Below, piece by piece: positions 45,527 through 51,872 of a stretch of DNA of 64,000 nucleotides. A program made the translations under genes and the position numbers. A model generated the notes under the pieces. That model ran no database searches. It was not told the DNA's origin and saw nothing but the letters and a program-made list of their open reading frames with translations. The stretch lies in the IMG/VR virus record IMGVR_UViG_3300042879_006196, positions 124,001 to 188,000 of that record; one strand, written 5' to 3'. Each line of letters opens with the position of its first letter. Position 1 is the first letter of the stretch.

Positions 45527-45727
45527 ATGAAGAGTGCTTACAAGAAAATTAAAAATATAATTGACGATACTTGTCACATATCTTTGAATGAAGATCATGG
45601 AGATTGTGATGATAAAATATCAAAATTTTTAATTGAAGAAGCAAAACTTCAGTGTATTATTAAAGTTTTAATTGAACACAATTATATTGATTCAAATCAT
45701 AGAACTTTTCCTGAATACACATCATAA
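45527..45727 (+). CDS. Hypothetical protein
   Basis: 66-aa ORF directly upstream of the RNase gene. Confidence 0.45.
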   Translation: MKSAYKKIKNIIDDTCHISLNEDHGDCDDKISKFLIEEAKLQCIIKVLIEHNYIDSNHRTFPEYTS

Positions 45728-45735
45728 GGAAAAAA

Positions 45736-46158
45736 ATGAATAAAAACATATCTACAAAAATTGTATCAGCTCTTTCGATCTTTGCTCTGGCAACCACTTC
45801 TTTTGCACAATCTACTTTCGGGAGACCTCACATTAATTCAGTGACTGGTAGAGTTAATGTTTTACCAAATGTAAGAGTTATTGATTTTGGAAGACTCATT
45901 TATCAAGGAAGAATGGACGTAAATTCTACTATTGATAGAATCAGATTGGGTAGAAAGCTAAATCATAAAAATGACGGATCATTTTTTTCAAATTTTCAAC
46001 GAAGACTTCCAGCAAGCCCAGACACACAATACTACAGAGAGTTTGTTCATCAAATGAATGGTTTTCCTTTTCCTGGACCACAAAGAGTGGTAATTGGCAA
46101 AAGAGGAGAAGTGTGGTATACAGGTGATCATTACAGTTCTTTTTTCAAAGTAAGATAA
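45736..46158 (+). CDS. Secreted guanyl-specific ribonuclease (barnase/RNase Sa, N1/T1 family)
   Basis: Signal peptide ending SFA/QS; DGSFFSNFQRRLP...YYREF...GPQRVVIG...VWYTGDHYSSF with catalytic E, R and H positions. Confidence 0.88.
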   Translation: MNKNISTKIVSALSIFALATTSFAQSTFGRPHINSVTGRVNVLPNVRVIDFGRLIYQGRMDVNSTIDRIRLGRKLNHKNDGSFFSNFQRRLPASPDTQYYREFVHQMNGFPFPGPQRVVIGKRGEVWYTGDHYSSFFKVR

Positions 46159-46177
46159 GATTGTGTATAATTAATAC

Positions 46178-47197
46178 ATGAGTAAGATTGAATCCGACAA
46201 AGAAAAAAAACAATCTATAAAACCTATTGCTAAAAAAACTGATTTTAATGGTGATAAAATAACACATTCTGAAACCGAAAAAACCAGAGGTGTTGTTGTA
46301 TTTTTATCATCTGACTTAAGTGGTGCACCAGAAGTAATAGATGTTCACGACGGTACAGTAGATTTGGATGCTACCAACTCTCTAAAGAATGACACCGAAT
46401 CAGAAAACTTGGTATTACAAAGCTTATATTTTGATTCAATTTCGCCTGAAATCAATTGTAAACAACAAAAAATGTATCTAAAAGGCTCAGGTTTAAATTC
46501 AAAATTACCTGAGATTAAATGCAAAACAACACTCAGGGAGCGAATAGAAGATAAAAAAAACTCAATGCTGTCTAGAACTATTTTTTTGATAAATTTGTTC
46601 TTTTTGAAGAAAAAGTACACAAATTTCTTTACAAATATTTATTCAGAAATAATACCAGAAGATGTTTTCCAAGCAAAGGTTTTGAATTTGACTAAGTTCA
46701 ATCGCAATAGATTGATGAAAAAGTATGGTATCAGTGAAGATGAGCTCAATTTTATTGCTTTTGCAAGATTCTCGTACCCATTTATAACTAGAGGTGAAAA
46801 AGAATGGAGCAAAATCGAAAAAAATGCTGATGCGTTCATTGCAAGAAAATGGATAACAGAAGACATTAAAGGTAATTTCAAAATAAATGTTAGCAAAGTT
46901 TATACATTCAGGGAAAAAATTATTTTTCCTAATCAATTTAAAGACATTGTTATCAAAAAAGCTTTTAATTGGAAAATCTTAAATAAGATTCTGAGAAAAG
47001 TTGAAAGAAGTGCAAAAACTCAAGTGCACGTTTATACTATTTCTCAAATTAGCAAACTTCCTTTTACCCAATTTGGAAATAGTAATATTGCCACTCATCC
47101 TCCTATTAGTAAAAATGATGAACAAATAAGTAGTTTGATCAAGAAAAAACCAATTGAAGCAATGAGTAGCATTAATAAAAAAAATTTTTTAAAATAA
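46178..47197 (+). CDS. Hypothetical basic protein
   Basis: 339-aa ORF preceded by TGTGTATAAT. Confidence 0.55.
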   Translation: MSKIESDKEKKQSIKPIAKKTDFNGDKITHSETEKTRGVVVFLSSDLSGAPEVIDVHDGTVDLDATNSLKNDTESENLVLQSLYFDSISPEINCKQQKMYLKGSGLNSKLPEIKCKTTLRERIEDKKNSMLSRTIFLINLFFLKKKYTNFFTNIYSEIIPEDVFQAKVLNLTKFNRNRLMKKYGISEDELNFIAFARFSYPFITRGEKEWSKIEKNADAFIARKWITEDIKGNFKINVSKVYTFREKIIFPNQFKDIVIKKAFNWKILNKILRKVERSAKTQVHVYTISQISKLPFTQFGNSNIATHPPISKNDEQISSLIKKKPIEAMSSINKKNFLK

Positions 47198-47264
47198 AAT
47201 AAAATAAGAAACTTTTTTAAAGGAAAAACCGTCTAAGATTGTGTAATATAAAAAAGGAACTAAA

Positions 47265-47318
47265 ATGACAAATTCGCTACTCCATTCATATCCAGCCTAC
47301 GCACCCTCATCGGGGTAG
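47265..47318 (+). CDS. Leader peptide of tRNA array 1 (MTNSLLHSYPAYAPSSG)
   Basis: RBS AAGGA; ATG at 47265 to TAG at 47316-47318; codons match the downstream tRNAs (Pro, Tyr, Leu, His, Ala). Confidence 0.8.
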   Translation: MTNSLLHSYPAYAPSSG

Positions 47319-47387
47319 TGGCTCGTTGCGTATTTGACAAGCTACAGAACCCCGAAGGACTCAAATCTTTCGGGGTTTTTTATTTTT
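47294..47387 (+). promoter_or_regulatory. Transcription attenuator 1 (protector/antiterminator/terminator)
   Basis: 1:2 pairs 47294-47306 with 47312-47323; 2:3 pairs TCGGGGT/GTGGCT (47310-47323) with AGCTAC/ACCCCGA (47340-47355); 3:4 is the terminator 47348-47377 plus U-tract. Confidence 0.8.
47348..47387 (+). terminator. Intrinsic terminator upstream of tRNA array 1
   Basis: AACCCCGAAGGA-CTCAAA-TCTTTCGGGGTT followed by a T-rich tract. Confidence 0.88.
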
Positions 47388-47410
47388 GAACATTGACAAT
47401 TTAATAAAAT

Positions 47411-47489
47411 CTATGCGTTGAGGAGTTTGGCTTACCTCGCGTCCCTTGGGAGGACGAGTACGCAGGTTCAAATCCTGCCGCATAGACCA
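47411..47489 (+). tRNA. tRNA-Pro(TGG)
   Basis: Acceptor CTATGCG/CGCATAG; anticodon arm CGTCC-CTTGGGA-GGACG; encoded CCA. Confidence 0.9.
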
Positions 47490-47493
47490 ATTT

Positions 47494-47578
47494 GGGGGCA
47501 TCGCATAGTGGCAATTGCTGGAGACTGTAAATCTCCCCTCGCGAGAGTTCGTAGGTTCGAGTCCTTCTGCCCCCACCA
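47494..47578 (+). tRNA. tRNA-Tyr(GTA)
   Basis: GGAGA-CTGTAAA-TCTCC; long variable arm; CCA. Confidence 0.93.
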
Positions 47579-47585
47579 AAATTTT

Positions 47586-47665
47586 GCCGAAGTGGTGGAA
47601 TGCATACACGCTAGTCTTAGAAACTAGTGCCTTAGGGCATGTGGGTTCAAATCCCACCTTCGGTA
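47586..47665 (+). tRNA. tRNA-Leu(TAG)
   Basis: CTAGT-CTTAGAA-ACTAG; variable arm; ends TCA rather than CCA. Confidence 0.88.
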
Positions 47666-47671
47666 TCAAAT

Positions 47672-47745
47672 AAGCAAGTAGCTCAATTGGTAGAGCCTTT
47701 TGGTTGTGACCCAGAAGCGTGTGAGTTCAAATCTCACCTTGCTGA
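47672..47745 (+). tRNA. tRNA-His(GTG), atypical or degenerate acceptor end
   Basis: TTTGG-TTGTGAC-CCAGA; canonical D and T arms; 1:72 mismatch, no G-1/C73, no CCA. Confidence 0.7.
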
Positions 47746-47754
47746 CTCAGTTTA

Positions 47755-47831
47755 GGGGCTGAAGCTTATTAGGGAAAGCGTCTGATTTGCAATCAGAAGT
47801 CTTGCGGGTTCGAAACCCGTCAGCTCCACCA
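47755..47831 (+). tRNA. tRNA-Ala(TGC)
   Basis: G3:U70 present; TCTGA-TTTGCAA-TCAGA; CCA. Confidence 0.92.
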
Positions 47832-47832
47832 A

Positions 47833-48150
47833 TTACAAATCATAAAATCTCTTTGGAGTGTAAATATATTTCATAGGCTGAACACCTACCTCGTCAGGTT
47901 GAGTTGTAGGTTCTTCAGCTAATTCGCCTAATACCGCTGGTGGCTCAGGAATAGGGGGATTAATTTGTGCTGGTTCGTTAACAACATTATTTTGTTTACG
48001 ATTATATTCTCTTGCCAATTCTTTACAAGTTTCGCAAGCTCTTTCATCAAATTGCCAGATTGTGTTTCCGCCAGGAAGTTGTTCAATGAAGCATCTACAC
48101 CCTTCATGCACAGGAGGTAAGATTTGTTGTTGTGAATATTTATACCACAC
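47833..48150 (-). CDS. Small protein with a PPxHxxCRC motif (minor-head-protein-like); start probably GTG at 48150
   Basis: (M)WYKYSQQQILPPVHEGCRC...CETC; AGG-N18-TGAA motif upstream; separates the two tRNA arrays. Confidence 0.55.
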   Translation of the reverse strand: MWYKYSQQQILPPVHEGCRCFIEQLPGGNTIWQFDERACETCKELAREYNRKQNNVVNEPAQINPPIPEPPAVLGELAEEPTTQPDEVGVQPMKYIYTPKRFYDL

Positions 48151-48239
48151 AATCTGATTTTCAAGAAAAAAAACAAAAAAACCTAATTTTATAGAACAAA
48201 AAGGAGATTGTGTCGTATAATCATAATAAGGAATTAACA

Positions 48240-48308
48240 ATGAAATTAAATTTGCAGGGCAGTATGGTGGGATGTTTTATTTGGTCAACCCAAGGGGGTA
48301 GTGGCTAG
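48240..48308 (+). CDS. Leader peptide of tRNA array 2 (MKLNLQGSMVGCFIWSTQGGSG)
   Basis: TATAAT at 48215-48220; RBS TAAGGA; ATG at 48240 to TAG at 48306-48308; codons match the downstream tRNAs. Confidence 0.82.
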   Translation: MKLNLQGSMVGCFIWSTQGGSG

Positions 48309-48373
48309 AAACCTGCTGTTAGCAAAAATTTCAACCAAAATCCCTGAAGGCAAAATCTTCAGGGATTTTTTTT
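48282..48373 (+). promoter_or_regulatory. Transcription attenuator 2
   Basis: 1:2 hairpin TGGTCA-ACCC-[AAGG]-GGGT-AG-TGGCTA (48282-48307); G-run/TGG/GAAA (48293-48311) can pair imperfectly with TTTC/CCA/TCCCT (48329-48345); terminator 48337-48373. Confidence 0.72.
48337..48373 (+). terminator. Intrinsic terminator upstream of tRNA array 2
   Basis: AAAATCCCTGAAGG-CAAAA-TCTTCAGGGATTTTTTTT. Confidence 0.9.
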
Positions 48374-48374
48374 A

Positions 48375-48388
48375 TGTTCTTTGACAAT
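48375..48388 (+). promoter_or_regulatory. boxA-like antitermination element (variant GAACATTGACAAT at 47388-47400)
   Basis: TGTTCTTTGACAAT resembles rrn boxA; same relative position before both arrays. Confidence 0.55.
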
Positions 48389-48398
48389 TAAATAGTGA

Positions 48399-48474
48399 GC
48401 GATATTGGTGTTAATGGTTAGCATCACTGCCTTCCAAGCAGAGGGTGCCAGTTCGAATCTGGCATATCGCTCCA
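48399..48474 (+). tRNA. tRNA-Gly(TCC)
   Basis: GCGATAT/ATATCGC; loop CTTCCAA; U73; CCA. Confidence 0.92.
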
Positions 48475-48482
48475 GATTATGT

Positions 48483-48558
48483 GGCTTTCAGGTGTAACTG
48501 GTGTGCACGAAGTGCTGAAAACGCTTAGGACATAGTTCAATTCTATGGGGAGCCACCA
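48483..48558 (+). tRNA. tRNA-Phe(GAA)
   Basis: AAGTG-CTGAAAA-CGCTT; CCA. Confidence 0.88.
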
Positions 48559-48567
48559 CAATTTTGA

Positions 48568-48654
48568 GGAAGGTAATGCTGAATGGTTTTGGCGAATGTT
48601 TGCTAAACATTTCGGGCTGAAAGGTCTCTGGTTCAATTCCAGTGCCTTCCTCCA
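48568..48654 (+). tRNA. tRNA-Ser(GCT)
   Basis: AATGT-TTGCTAA-ACATT; long variable arm; CCA. Confidence 0.88.
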
Positions 48655-48659
48655 TACAA

Positions 48660-48747
48660 GGGGAATTCGCATAGTGGTCTAGTGCGGCTGTCTTGAAAAC
48701 AGTAGGGCTGAAAGGTTCCGTGGGTTCGAATCCTACATTCCCCTCCA
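48660..48747 (+). tRNA. tRNA-Ser(TGA)
   Basis: GCTGT-CTTGAAA-ACAGT; long variable arm; CCA. Confidence 0.92.
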
Positions 48748-48755
48748 AGTTTTGT

Positions 48756-48829
48756 GTTGTCTCTAGCTCAGTTGGTAGAGCATTCCATCGCGAGGAAAGG
48801 CGAAGGTTCAATTCCTTCGGGCAACACCA
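48756..48829 (+). tRNA. Atypical tRNA-like gene with nominal anticodon CGC, identity uncertain
   Basis: Canonical D and T arms and CCA, but a 4-bp anticodon stem TTCC-ATCGCGA-GGAA, a bulged acceptor stem and no G3:U70. Confidence 0.6.
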
Positions 48830-48835
48830 TTTTAT

Positions 48836-48922
48836 TGAGGAATAGTGTAATTGGTAACACGCTAGGTTTTGGCCCTAGAGACAGAAATGCTCGTCCACGT
48901 TCGAATCGTGGTTCCTCAGCCA
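48836..48922 (+). tRNA. tRNA-Gln(TTG) with a long variable arm
   Basis: TGAGGAA/TTCCTCA; G73; CTAGG-TTTTGGC-CCTAG; 16-nt variable region; CCA. Confidence 0.85.
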
Positions 48923-48925
48923 AGC

Positions 48926-49000
48926 ATCCGAGTAGCTCAATGGTAGAGCCCAATCTTGATAAGGTTGAGGTTTTTGGTTCAAGCCCAAACTCGGATACCA
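48926..49000 (+). tRNA. tRNA-Ile(GAT)
   Basis: CAATC-TTGATAA-GGTTG; CCA. Confidence 0.88.
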
Positions 49001-49001
49001 C

Positions 49002-49076
49002 ATCCGCGTAGCTCAACGGTAGAGCAAAATCCTTACAAGATTGAGGTTTTTGGTTCGAATCCAAACGTGGATACCA
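49002..49076 (+). tRNA. tRNA-Val(TAC)
   Basis: AATC-CTTACAA-GATT; CCA. Confidence 0.88.
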
Positions 49077-49081
49077 ATTTC

Positions 49082-49155
49082 GGCAAATTAGCTCAATGGC
49101 AGAGCGGAGGTATCATAAGCCTTTGATAAAAGTTCGATTCTTTTATTTGCCCCCA
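49082..49155 (+). tRNA. tRNA with CAT anticodon (elongator Met or Ile2)
   Basis: GAGGT-ATCATAA-GCCTT; paired 1:72 and no initiator triple G-C; CCA. Confidence 0.8.
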
Positions 49156-49158
49156 TAA

Positions 49159-49232
49159 GCACGATTAGCTAAATGGTAAAGCAAGGGTCTGCAAAACCTT
49201 TATCGCTGGTTCGATTCCAGCATTGTGCTCCA
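49159..49232 (+). tRNA. tRNA-Cys(GCA)
   Basis: AGGGT-CTGCAAA-ACCTT; U73; CCA. Confidence 0.92.
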
Positions 49233-49235
49233 TAC

Positions 49236-49310
49236 ACCGCTGAGAGTAGGTTGTTTCTAAAGAGTCTCCAAAACTTTTTTACCTGGGTTCAAATCCCAGC
49301 GGCGGTGCCA
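49236..49310 (+). tRNA. tRNA-Trp(CCA), atypical D arm
   Basis: AGAGT-CTCCAAA-ACTTT; G73; CCA. Confidence 0.82.
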
Positions 49311-49313
49311 ATC

Positions 49314-49622
49314 TCACGACACAATCTTAATAATATGCGGTTCTGTTTCTGAGATATTGAATATACCATCACCCAATTGATATTTTTTACCTAAATCATC
49401 AATGAAATCCTGAAATTGCGTTTCAGCATTTTCAATCACTTCTTGGTTTTGTGCAAATTCTGCCTGTAGGGATTGCATTTGCTTTTCAGTTTTTCTCATC
49501 ATATCAAATAAATCTGATCTTTTTCCTTTCAGATTAAGAATACCAGCTCTCATTTGGGTATAGTTGTTGAATTCTTCTTTGGAAAGTGCTTTTTCAGATT
49601 GTGTGTCGCTTTTGAACTTCAT
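49314..49622 (-). CDS. Hypothetical coiled-coil protein
   Basis: 102-aa ORF downstream of the endolysin. Confidence 0.55.
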   Translation of the reverse strand: MKFKSDTQSEKALSKEEFNNYTQMRAGILNLKGKRSDLFDMMRKTEKQMQSLQAEFAQNQEVIENAETQFQDFIDDLGKKYQLGDGIFNISETEPHIIKIVS

Positions 49623-49640
49623 AATATTATTTTACAAGAT

Positions 49641-50489
49641 TTATCTTGTTCTTATTAAAACAAAAGTGGCTCCAGTTTTATCACAAACATCTCTCAAAAA
49701 TATCCAAGCGCTGCCATTTTCATCTATCTCGGCTACAGGCACAGAATAACCTTTCAAGCCATTCATCCACACAATGTTTTTGCCCATTTTTGTCAAAGCA
49801 TAATTTTTGGGTTGTAATTTATTAATAAATTCTCTAGCAGGAACAATAGTTCTACTATTTACCACTCTTGTTTTACCATAAATGAAAACATTATCTCCCA
49901 ATGTTATTTCAAAAACAGGATTAGTCCAAGGCGCGGCACCTTCCCCACTAAAAATTAAATATTGTTTATTTACTGCATCTACAAATTTTGTTTTGTCTAC
50001 AAGTTTACCAGGGCATGTTTTATTTGTCAAAGGGTCATCTCTATGGAATTTAAGTGTAGGTGGTTGCACCTTTAGATAATCGCAAAGAAACCCACACAAT
50101 TCTTGAGTGATTTCAAAAATTTCTTTTGCTCTATGTGAAGTGAAATCTGTAACAGTGTCGTAGTCACCTAGCATTTCTATACCCCAAGCATTAGCATTAT
50201 AGCTTTTGGCATGTACGCCAGGTTTGTTTAATGCTTGAAAAAGAATAATTCCTTTATCATCTACAAAAAAATGTGGTGCACCGTTCCAATTCATAACATG
50301 CTCATAATAATATTTCAAATTGATGAGATGTTGATCTGTGAAGCCATTTGGTCTTTGTGAAAGATTAGGTGAGGCTGTGTGATGTACTACAACAAATTGC
50401 GGTTTAAATGAAGTGAAATTCAAAGTTGCTAAATAAGTTTTTAGTTCTGCGATCGTTACTCTTTTGCCAACATAAGGAATAGTGCCCAT
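49641..50489 (-). CDS. N-acetylmuramoyl-L-alanine amidase (Amidase_2/PGRP-like endolysin)
   Basis: VVVHHTA...HFFVD...GVHAKSYN...GIEMLG...FHRD...KTCPG; C-terminal domain resembling copper amine oxidase N-terminal repeats. Confidence 0.88.
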   Translation of the reverse strand: MGTIPYVGKRVTIAELKTYLATLNFTSFKPQFVVVHHTASPNLSQRPNGFTDQHLINLKYYYEHVMNWNGAPHFFVDDKGIILFQALNKPGVHAKSYNANAWGIEMLGDYDTVTDFTSHRAKEIFEITQELCGFLCDYLKVQPPTLKFHRDDPLTNKTCPGKLVDKTKFVDAVNKQYLIFSGEGAAPWTNPVFEITLGDNVFIYGKTRVVNSRTIVPAREFINKLQPKNYALTKMGKNIVWMNGLKGYSVPVAEIDENGSAWIFLRDVCDKTGATFVLIRTR

Positions 50490-50544: not shown

Positions 50545-51090
50545 ATGACTTTGAATTGCAATATTCCACATTTTGAATGTTTTGTTAAAAAAGAATTTCT
50601 TACCAACTTTACACAATCTGATGAGTTGATAAAAGCCAAAGCTTTTGCAGTGTCGAGCACAAGAGGTCAAGTGTTACAGTTTCATGTTTTGACAGAGCAT
50701 GGAGCAATGTTTTCTAAACTTCCAGTGCATGCTTTAGTTCTTAAAAAAGATTATGAAAAAATGGAATTAAATCAGCTTGTCACTTATGATACTTTTAGTT
50801 TTCATTTGTCAAACATTACTTATGATTATTTAAAATATTTGACATGCACATACTTTGCTGGTGATAAACGCGAAAAATATGGGGCTACATATTTTACAAC
50901 AGTTGATTTTTATGATTCCGAGTATGCAGATCACCCTGGTGTCACTAAATGTTGTCATATTTTGTTTTTAGATAATGGCAATATTGCGGCAGCACCAAAC
51001 AATAGAATCCTATGGAACGACACAGGATTAAAGTCAGATGTAACGAAAATTGATTATAAGCCTTTAAATAAAATCTTTACAGTGGAATGA
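50545..51090 (+). CDS. Conserved hypothetical phage protein
   Basis: LNCNIPHFECFV...FHVLTEHGAMFSKLPVHAL...LDNGNIAAAPNNRILW. Confidence 0.6.
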   Translation: MTLNCNIPHFECFVKKEFLTNFTQSDELIKAKAFAVSSTRGQVLQFHVLTEHGAMFSKLPVHALVLKKDYEKMELNQLVTYDTFSFHLSNITYDYLKYLTCTYFAGDKREKYGATYFTTVDFYDSEYADHPGVTKCCHILFLDNGNIAAAPNNRILWNDTGLKSDVTKIDYKPLNKIFTVE

Positions 51091-51872
51091 AAATATTTTT
51101 TGATCATATTCTTTTTCAGCAAACTAATTACAATTTTAATCATACACTTGTATCTGCAATTTTTGAAGAAAATGAATATAATTATGCATTAGAAAATGGA
51201 TGGTTTCCAGATAATTTTTGGATAAATTCATCTACAAGTCATTCAATAAGATGTGAAAAATTGGGCGAATTTGTTTGGTCTCCAATAAGATCTTCTAGAA
51301 TTAAAGTGGAGGATTTTGTACTTGACAAAAAAGATAGAAGATTACTTAAAAATAATATTGATGTAGAAAAGCAAATTGTTTCGCAAATAGATACTGTAGA
51401 AGTGTTTGAAGTTTATAAAAAATATATTTGCGCAAAAGGATTCGATGATTTTAAGGATTCATTAGAAGATTTCAAACATAGTTTTTGCCGAGAAGATTTT
51501 CATTTTTTACTTTACAAACAAAACACAATCTTAATAGGCTTTTGTATTGTGCAACCATTTGGAAATAATCTAGTGTCTTATCAATTTTGTTGGGATTATG
51601 AAAATCCAAAATTAAGTTTGGGAAAATTTTCACAAATTCAAGAAATAGAATATGCTAAATCACTCAACATGAATTATGTTTACATAGGATGCATTGCTGA
51701 AAAAGAAGGAATGTATAAAAGTAATTTTTCTGGATTTGAATATTTTAATGGAAGAGAATGGAGAAAGAAAGATAACTTAATCGAAAAATGGCTTTTGAAT
51801 GATTCAGATTGTGTGAGTATTGACAGATTGTGTGAGTTAGAAAAGGAATACATCAAAGACTACCAGGTTTAA
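51087..51872 (+). CDS. Aminoacyl-tRNA-protein transferase-like (ATE1/Bpt family GNAT fold)
   Basis: ALENGWF...RSSRI...YQFCWDYENPKLSLGKFSQIQEIEYAK...YVYIG...MYKSNF. Confidence 0.75.
   Translation: MKIFFDHILFQQTNYNFNHTLVSAIFEENEYNYALENGWFPDNFWINSSTSHSIRCEKLGEFVWSPIRSSRIKVEDFVLDKKDRRLLKNNIDVEKQIVSQIDTVEVFEVYKKYICAKGFDDFKDSLEDFKHSFCREDFHFLLYKQNTILIGFCIVQPFGNNLVSYQFCWDYENPKLSLGKFSQIQEIEYAKSLNMNYVYIGCIAEKEGMYKSNFSGFEYFNGREWRKKDNLIEKWLLNDSDCVSIDRLCELEKEYIKDYQV

Follow-up and report, generated by a model that had tools for sequence, protein, structure and literature searches.

Why would a giant phage place a short open reading frame (ORF) and an intrinsic terminator directly in front of its tRNA genes, and what might a ribosome translating that ORF report? 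The question arises from a 64,000-nt stretch (hereafter the window) of a 347-kb IMG/VR contig, IMGVR_UViG_3300042879_006196, which belongs to a jumbo phage with a large terminase, a Mu-like portal and an amidase endolysin. A preliminary description of leader 1 proposed a four-segment fold in which segment 2 can pair either with segment 1, within the Pro-Ala-Tyr-Ala-Pro codons, or with a segment 3 that includes the 5′ arm of the terminator, and inferred trp-type logic in which a stall on the sensing codons favors the antiterminator. All of its strings and coordinates are right (Table 1). It did not say what is being controlled, however, and this is the real point of interest: the genes downstream are tRNA genes, and the sensing codons are those of these tRNAs. 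A paralogous unit lies about 1 kb downstream, with a gene on the other strand between the two.

Table 1. Coordinates (window numbering) of the two leaders, their alternative structures and the tRNA arrays
Position	Strand	Feature
47208..47249	+	Conserved upstream block of leader 1 (GAAAC, 17 nt, CGTC, then TAATAT); candidate promoter
47255..47259	+	Shine-Dalgarno-like AGGAA, 5 nt before the ATG of leader 1
47265..47318	+	Leader-1 ORF, 17 codons plus TAG (47316-47318): MTNSLLHSYPAYAPSSG
47277..47306	+	Leader-1 sensing block, codons 5-14: Leu Leu His Ser Tyr Pro Ala Tyr Ala Pro
47294..47307	+	Segment 1 (anti-antiterminator strand); pairs with 47312-47323
47310..47323	+	Segment 2, UCGGGGUAGUGGCU; contains the stop codon
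47340..47355	+	Segment 3: AGCUAC, 4 nt, then CCCCGA (lower 5′ arm of the terminator)
47346..47387	+	Intrinsic terminator: hairpin 47346-47379 (13-14 bp stem, 6-nt loop), then U6-A-U5 tract
47393..47406	+	Invariant box TTGACAATTTAATA
47411..47831	+	tRNA array 1: Pro(UGG), Tyr(GUA), Leu(UAG), His(GUG), Ala(UGC)
48194..48233	+	Upstream block of leader 2 (GAAC, 16 nt, CGTATAAT) and AGGAA
48240..48308	+	Leader-2 ORF, 22 codons plus TAG: MKLNLQGSMVGCFIWSTQGGSG; sensing block is codons 6-16 (48255-48287)
48280..48369	+	Leader-2 switch: 1:2 is 48280-48291 with 48296-48309; 2:3 is 48294-48304 with 48335-48345; terminator is 48337-48369, followed by U8
48381..48394	+	Second copy of the invariant box, TTGACAATTAAATA
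48399..49310	+	tRNA array 2: Gly(UCC), Phe(GAA), probable Ser(GCU) at 48566-48655, Ser(UGA), Ala(CGC), Gln(UUG), Ile(GAU), Val(UAC), Met(CAU), Cys(GCA), Trp(CCA)

We first asked whether the proposed helices of leader 1 are energetically plausible. Folded separately, the 1:2 hairpin has -12.3 kcal/mol, the 2:3 antiterminator (47310-47355) has -21.3 kcal/mol and the 3:4 terminator has -20.0 kcal/mol. The 2:3 structure consists of UCGGGG:CCCCGA, GUGGCU:AGCUAC and a small inner helix, and overlaps the lower 6-7 pairs of the terminator stem (47349-47355). Segment 2 repeats the UCGGGGU string of the terminator's 3′ arm, which is why both can pair with the same 5′ arm. The whole leader folds better than shuffled sequences (z = -2.7, 2 of 200 as good), and the duplex between the upstream leader and the terminator's 5′ arm (-16.4 kcal/mol) is stronger than that in 495 of 500 dinucleotide shuffles. 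The short ORF has a conserved AGGAA 7-9 nt before its ATG, which is present at the same distance in all leader-1 and leader-2 variants, while only 15 of 51 window ORFs have such a motif.

We next modeled the effect of a ribosome by masking the RNA up to 12 nt past the first base of the A-site codon. The antiterminator then has a probability of 1.00 with the A-site at codons 1-12 and of 0.00 from codon 13 to the stop, consistent with the trp-type logic. The caveat in the preliminary description, that stalls on the last sensing codons may partly cover segment 2, is also right: with the A-site on codons 13-14 (GCA, CCC), the ribosome would already cover the GGGG of segment 2. Stalls at the first Leu codons, in turn, may leave 1:2 intact. 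Without a ribosome, 1:2 forms first and remains the minimum-energy fold until the transcript reaches 47353, 2:3 takes over from 47355 to 47370, and the terminator plus 1:2 wins once the 3′ arm is out. The computed barriers are 8.1 kcal/mol for 1:2 to 2:3 and only 3.7 kcal/mol for 2:3 to the terminator state, which is favored by 7-13 kcal/mol once the 3′ arm exists. We note that the decision must therefore be kinetic, as in classical attenuators, and that read-through efficiency could be low. With this qualification, the four-segment reading fits every computation made here.

Leader 2 shows the same switch. It shares with leader 1 the upstream layout and the GGGGUAGUGGCU motif, the latter read in a different frame. 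Its 1:2 helix has -11.4 kcal/mol, its 2:3 structure (GGGGGU:AUCCCU plus UGG:CCA around an inner hairpin) has -13.5 kcal/mol and its terminator has -17.8 kcal/mol. The antiterminator is the minimum-energy fold with the A-site at codons 7-15 and is lost from codon 16, so that the effective stall window coincides with the block of tRNA-matching codons. By itself, however, the 2:3 duplex of leader 2 is not stronger than in shuffled sequence (152 of 500), and its support is positional and comparative.

What, then, do the leader codons name? The arrays were called with ARAGORN and the Rfam tRNA model. ARAGORN misses the probable Ser(GCU) gene, which has the anticodon loop UUGCUAA and scores 42.2 bits on the tRNA-Sec model; its orthologue in L088 is called Ser(gct) (L followed by a number denotes a related contig). 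In leader 1, nine of the ten codons 5-14 are read by the five tRNAs that follow, and all five are represented. Codons 6-16 of leader 2 are Gln, Gly, Ser(AGT), Met, Val, Gly, Cys, Phe, Ile, Trp and Ser(TCA); eleven of eleven are read by array 2, and they cover ten of its eleven tRNAs. With the codon usage of 43 long ORFs of the window as background, 9 of 16 codons of the whole leader 1 are read by array 1 against a background of 0.19 (p = 1e-3), and 16 of 21 codons of leader 2 are read by array 2 against a background of 0.38 (p = 4e-4). Chance for the leader-1 core is about 2.5e-6 per window of codons, and 0 of 17,178 windows in the phage's genes match it. For the leader-2 core, 0 of 17,135 gene windows reach 9 and 0 of 500,000 random draws reach 10. 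If the uncertain Ser(GCU) gene is left out, leader 2 still has 14 of 21 codons matched, covering 9 of 10 tRNAs. The match is array-specific: leader 1 shows no excess for array 2, and leader 2 has no codon read only by array 1.

To ask whether this arrangement is maintained, we searched for relatives. A nucleotide search of GenBank phages with 46000-50000 gave only generic tRNA matches and no relative. DNA-pattern searches of IMG/VR gave one true relative (contig L002) plus the window's own contig, the rest being chance; protein scans of IMG/VR gave the same two contigs, and a scan of a genome collection gave 10 chance hits and so no host clue. Two neighboring proteins were more productive: the 339-aa protein just upstream (14 clusters, 41-58% identity) and the 110-aa protein between the arrays (12 clusters, 44-72% identity), in each case apart from a 98%-identical cluster of the window's own phage. 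These gave metagenome contigs from several lake samples. In every related freshwater jumbo-phage contig found (neighboring proteins 41-66% identical), wherever the contig reaches the region, the leader, terminator, box and tRNA array are present, and contigs that span both arrays carry both units. The array-specific codon match holds in all seven lineages tabulated (Fisher p from 1e-4 to 5e-3).

The substitutions in these relatives are of the coding type. Across five sequence types of leader 1, codons 5, 10, 11, 13 and 15 change only synonymously (Leu at codon 5 appears as CTA, CTT or CTC), His and the first Tyr are invariant, the variable positions mostly stay within the sensed set, and the frame and stop position are kept. 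Length differences between lineages are 3 or 6 nt in leader 2, and in leader A of contig L229 a 3-nt insertion before the stop keeps the frame. Pairing is also maintained. In 9 related leader-1 sequences, segment 2 is invariant and the 2:3 pairs are 96.7% paired, although the helix is too conserved to provide covariation proof, with only compatible one-sided changes. The terminators carry compensatory pairs, one (AU/CG) in leader 1 and two in leader 2. The upper 1:2 helix (ACCC:GGGU) never varies, but three of the eleven 1:2 pairs, in the lower stem, are broken without compensation in one clade; that part of the segment 1 proposed in the preliminary description is therefore not a conserved feature. 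Pair counts for the leader-2 antiterminator on a MAFFT alignment are blurred by a register shift in one clade, and per-sequence folds are clearer. In the most divergent leaders (L229 A and B, and L234), segments 1, 2 and 3 have different sequences yet still give the three competing helices, segments 1 and 2 having changed together so that they still pair, and the ribosome-masking boundary is the same, 5-7 codons before the stop.

Some codon changes track tRNA content. The clade that gained tRNA-Leu(GAG) has a third Leu codon (CTC) in place of Tyr, contig L080 lacks both tRNA-Val and the Val codon, and the L002 clade lacks both tRNA-Ile and the Ile codon. The correspondence is imperfect, however. 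tRNA-Ala(CGC) is never represented in leader 2, the L002 clade keeps tRNA-Val without a Val codon, and L080 keeps TGG, which is part of segment 1, without tRNA-Trp. Leader 1 of L080 and L083 has CGA (Arg), but only L080 has tRNA-Arg, and it sits in array 2. The lineages are few (about 6) and related, so these events are suggestive rather than a statistical proof.

Taken together, these computations suggest to us, with reasonable though not complete confidence, that leader 1 and leader 2 are ribosome-mediated transcription attenuators that gate two phage tRNA operons. In this model, in which translation of the ORFs, the kinetic competition and read-through on stalling are inferred, transcription starts about 20-35 nt before the ORF and a ribosome loads at AGGAA-N5-ATG. 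If every codon is decoded promptly, the ribosome would reach the last codons or the stop, in or next to segment 2, while RNA polymerase is making segment 3; the covered segment 2 could not pair, and the terminator would end transcription before the first tRNA gene. A ribosome waiting at one of the central codons would instead cover segment 1 and leave segment 2 free to pair with the lower 5′ arm of the terminator, allowing read-through into the array. The quantity sensed is most likely the supply of the cognate charged tRNAs, host plus phage, in a demand-driven, self-limiting loop in which shortage of any one species switches on the array that contains its replacement and the accumulating phage tRNAs switch it off again. 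Each tRNA is represented by only one or two codons, whereas in classical attenuators runs of codons give sensitivity (see PMC1183508 for what tunes it), so this design would respond mainly to severe shortage. Possible triggers are a codon-usage mismatch with the host, tRNA loss during infection, or host tRNA-cleaving defenses, which phage tRNAs are known to counter (PMC10264068, PMC11555353, PMC12409363).

A more far-reaching reading, which we regard as only slightly more probable than not, is that the leaders are a phage-encoded tRNA-shortage alarm, each leader peptide being a codon-by-codon checklist of the tRNAs in its array. Loss of any one host tRNA, whether by codon mismatch, infection-induced decay, the phage's own neighboring ribonuclease, or host anticodon nucleases and other tRNA-cleaving defense systems, would stall the ribosome and turn on the phage's replacement set, which then shuts itself off. 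This would be the first leader-peptide attenuator known to control tRNA genes, and an inducible counter-defense circuit. The phage does encode a barnase/N1/T1-family ribonuclease two genes upstream and an ATE_C-fold protein nearby, but any link between these and the leaders is speculation.

Could the switch be real but report general translation capacity (ribosome availability, coupling, or a global slowdown after infection), with the codon composition as a by-product? One or two codons per tRNA is a weak design for sensing a single species, and part of each leader is dictated by RNA pairing, as TGG-TCA-ACC in leader 2 and GCA-CCC in leader 1 belong to segment 1. We nevertheless consider this unlikely, because the array-specific match is far beyond chance, amino acids are kept through synonymous changes outside the paired segments, and some codon changes track tRNA gain or loss. 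It is about as doubtful that the leader and terminator form an independent small gene (a micropeptide or small RNA) that always terminates, with the arrays transcribed from their own promoter in the TTGACAATTAAATA box. The terminators are strong, and the box holds a perfect TTGACA -35 hexamer, is invariant after every leader of every lineage, occurs only twice in the window, both times here, and lies 16-19 nt before the first downstream RNA gene in all lineages. However, there is no -10 element at 16-18 nt, any transcript start would fall inside the tRNA, and this reading explains neither the conserved alternative pairing that overlaps the terminator nor the codon-tRNA correspondence. The upstream blocks remain candidate promoters only: the GAAAC and CGTC columns are invariant in 9 relatives and the same layout stands before leader 2, but the GAA(A)C-N16-17-CGT(C/A) block, which we considered as an ECF-sigma-type promoter, is not enriched in the window (7 found against about 9 expected). 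A Pfam search of nine large window proteins found only the Mu-like portal, with no polymerase or sigma factor.

Direct sensing of tRNAs by codon-anticodon pairing without translation, in the manner of a T-box, is very unlikely. The matching codons are lined up in the leader, and relatives carry, after leader 1, a structured element with a GGUGGUACC-like string that may recall the T-box motif. There is, however, no match to the T-box model (RF00230) at gathering score in the window or in 6 relatives, none at E up to 1-5 around the leaders, and none for the extra element; a conserved Shine-Dalgarno sequence and ATG, in-frame indels, a conserved stop position and synonymous substitutions all point to translation, and ten adjacent specifier codons have no precedent. 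Chance, that is, an ordinary terminator of the upstream gene with a spurious small ORF, is a remote possibility. AT-rich intergenic DNA holds many short ORFs, and a terminator scan finds about as many sites as in shuffles over 4 kb, but two paralogous copies exist, each before a tRNA array, conserved in all relatives with coding-type substitutions and compensatory pairs, and the codon match has p below 1e-5.

If these leaders work as proposed, at least one phage lineage expresses its tRNAs on demand, reading the cell's decoding capacity with the ribosome itself, separately for two sets of tRNAs. Why phages carry tRNA genes, and how they deploy them, has been debated for decades, and current views are codon compensation, replacement of decaying host tRNAs and escape from tRNA-cleaving immunity (PMC10264068, PMC11555353). 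The proposed control would add to leader-peptide attenuation a class of target, stable RNA genes whose product is the sensed molecule, and a design with many codon families, one codon each, suited to detecting the absence of a tRNA rather than amino-acid starvation. It would also offer a compact natural sensor of the availability of individual tRNAs. We found no report of leader-peptide attenuation of tRNA genes, in phages or cells, in full-text searches that did not cover every journal. Small, crude screens of eight unrelated tRNA-bearing phage loci (T4, T5, phi92, a Bacillus Tsarbombavirus, Vibrio VF16, E. coli EJP2 and a 735-kb uncultured phage) found nothing comparable, although EJP2 is uninformative because no tRNA array there qualified for testing.

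Expression of phage tRNA genes is known, for example that of tRNA-Tyr of the T5-like phage SP15 (PMC11555353). Phage tRNA arrays supplement or replace host tRNAs, and a demand sensor would fit that role and the proposed role against tRNA-cleaving defenses (PMC10264068, PMC12409363). Those reports describe strong promoters or anticodon-loop changes rather than leader-peptide control, and two key papers on phage tRNAs do not mention leaders or attenuation. T-box riboswitches likewise give transcription antitermination in response to the state of a specific tRNA, with an antiterminator competing with an intrinsic terminator, but a T-box binds uncharged tRNA directly, has no translated ORF and one specifier codon, and controls synthetase, biosynthesis or transport genes. 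Among curated leader families, none reaches its gathering score in the window; the best sub-threshold hits are His_leader (RF00514) at 26.9 bits (cut-off 49) on leader 2 and the trpB motif at 25.5 bits (cut-off 59) on leader 1, and the aligned part is mostly the terminator. The pheM leader and attenuator of the E. coli pheST operon (phenylalanyl-tRNA synthetase) appears to act on a gene of the translation apparatus by sensing the charged cognate tRNA, but with a run of Phe codons, in a cellular genome and on a synthetase, whereas in our model the sensed product is itself the gene product under control and many species are sensed at once. The leader-peptide attenuators of enterobacterial amino-acid biosynthetic operons (trp, his, leu, thr, ilvGMEDA, pheA; the general principle is described in PMC1183508) also have a short translated ORF with regulatory codons, a stop codon next to segment 2 and three mutually exclusive helices ending in an intrinsic terminator, and the use of several different amino acids in one leader recalls thr (Thr, Ile) and ilv (Leu, Val, Ile). 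In the present case, the element is phage-encoded, the genes downstream are tRNA genes rather than biosynthetic enzymes, and the leader lists 5 or 10 different codon families once or twice each instead of a run of one.

A box with the sequence TTGACAATT(T/A)AATA follows each attenuator terminator and lies 16-19 nt before the first downstream RNA gene. The box is identical in most lineages; it becomes TTGAAAA in L090 and L229 and TTGACAG in L234, which, like L080, L086 and L088 below, are related metagenome contigs. It holds a perfect -35 hexamer but has no -10 partner, and it occurs nowhere else in the window. The coordinates of the box and of the other features described here are collected in the table.

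Features in and around the tRNA arrays of the window and of related contigs
Sequence	Position	Strand	Feature
Window	47393-47406 and 48381-48394		Box after each attenuator terminator
Window	45527-46158	+	Ribonuclease-domain protein, preceded by a conserved ORF
Window	48566-48655	+	Long-arm tRNA gene, probably tRNA-Ser(GCU)
Window	48836-48922	+	tRNA-Gln(UUG)
Window	51087-51872	+	ATE_C-domain protein
L002	7412-7512	-	Structured RNA between leader-1 box and tRNA-Pro
L080	9195-9292		Structured RNA between leader-1 box and tRNA-Pro
L090	2520-2640		Structured RNA between leader-1 box and tRNA-Pro
L229	5495-5605	-	Structured RNA between leader-1 box and tRNA-Pro
L002; L086; L088	5279-5367; 11747-11835; 5409-5497	- (L002)	tRNA genes with insertions
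L002	4055-4152	-	tRNA gene with insertion
L229	several		tRNA genes with insertions
L086, L229; L002; L080; L229	2932-4122, 1419-2666; 4264-4962; 14099-14659; 6288-6647		Mobile-element genes

In three clades, a conserved structured RNA of about 95 nt sits between the leader-1 box and tRNA-Pro, and this element is absent from the window. Its 3' hairpin has 5 compensatory pairs and is followed by GCCA or GCCG; its 5' part has a GGUGGUACC-like string. No Rfam match, including T-box, was found for this RNA. Some tRNA genes of the relatives, including those of the related IMG/VR contig L002, carry short insertions (about 17-24 nt) in or next to the anticodon loop. One insertion forms a hairpin that covaries between relatives. 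We note that the anticodons of some of these genes could not be assigned. L090 has the uninterrupted tRNA-Gly, and in L088 the leader-2 Gly codon GGA is GAA. Mobile-element genes interrupt or flank the tRNA region in relatives; these are TnpB/IS605-type, a resolvase, and HNH or Endonuclease_7 ORFs.

Most large proteins of the window have no Pfam or PHROG match, and only 15 of 51 long ORFs have a Shine-Dalgarno-like motif, whereas every leader ORF has AGGAA at the right distance. Among the proteins with a recognizable domain, a 140-aa protein with a PF00545 ribonuclease domain (barnase/N1/T1 family, 36 bits) is encoded two genes upstream of leader 1. A conserved 66-aa ORF precedes it, and the synteny is kept in relatives. 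A phage RNase beside its tRNA operons may be relevant to tRNA turnover. A 261-aa protein with an ATE_C domain (aminoacyl-tRNA-protein transferase fold, 52.7 bits) lies 1.8 kb beyond the tRNA arrays and is conserved in relatives next to a DnaJ-domain gene.

Within the window, a long-arm tRNA gene was missed by both ARAGORN and the Rfam tRNA model. Its anticodon loop is UUGCUAA, so it is probably tRNA-Ser(GCU), and it scores 42.2 bits with the tRNA-Sec model against a cut-off of 47. The tRNA-Gln(UUG) gene is 87 nt long with a long extra arm, which is unusual for a Gln tRNA.
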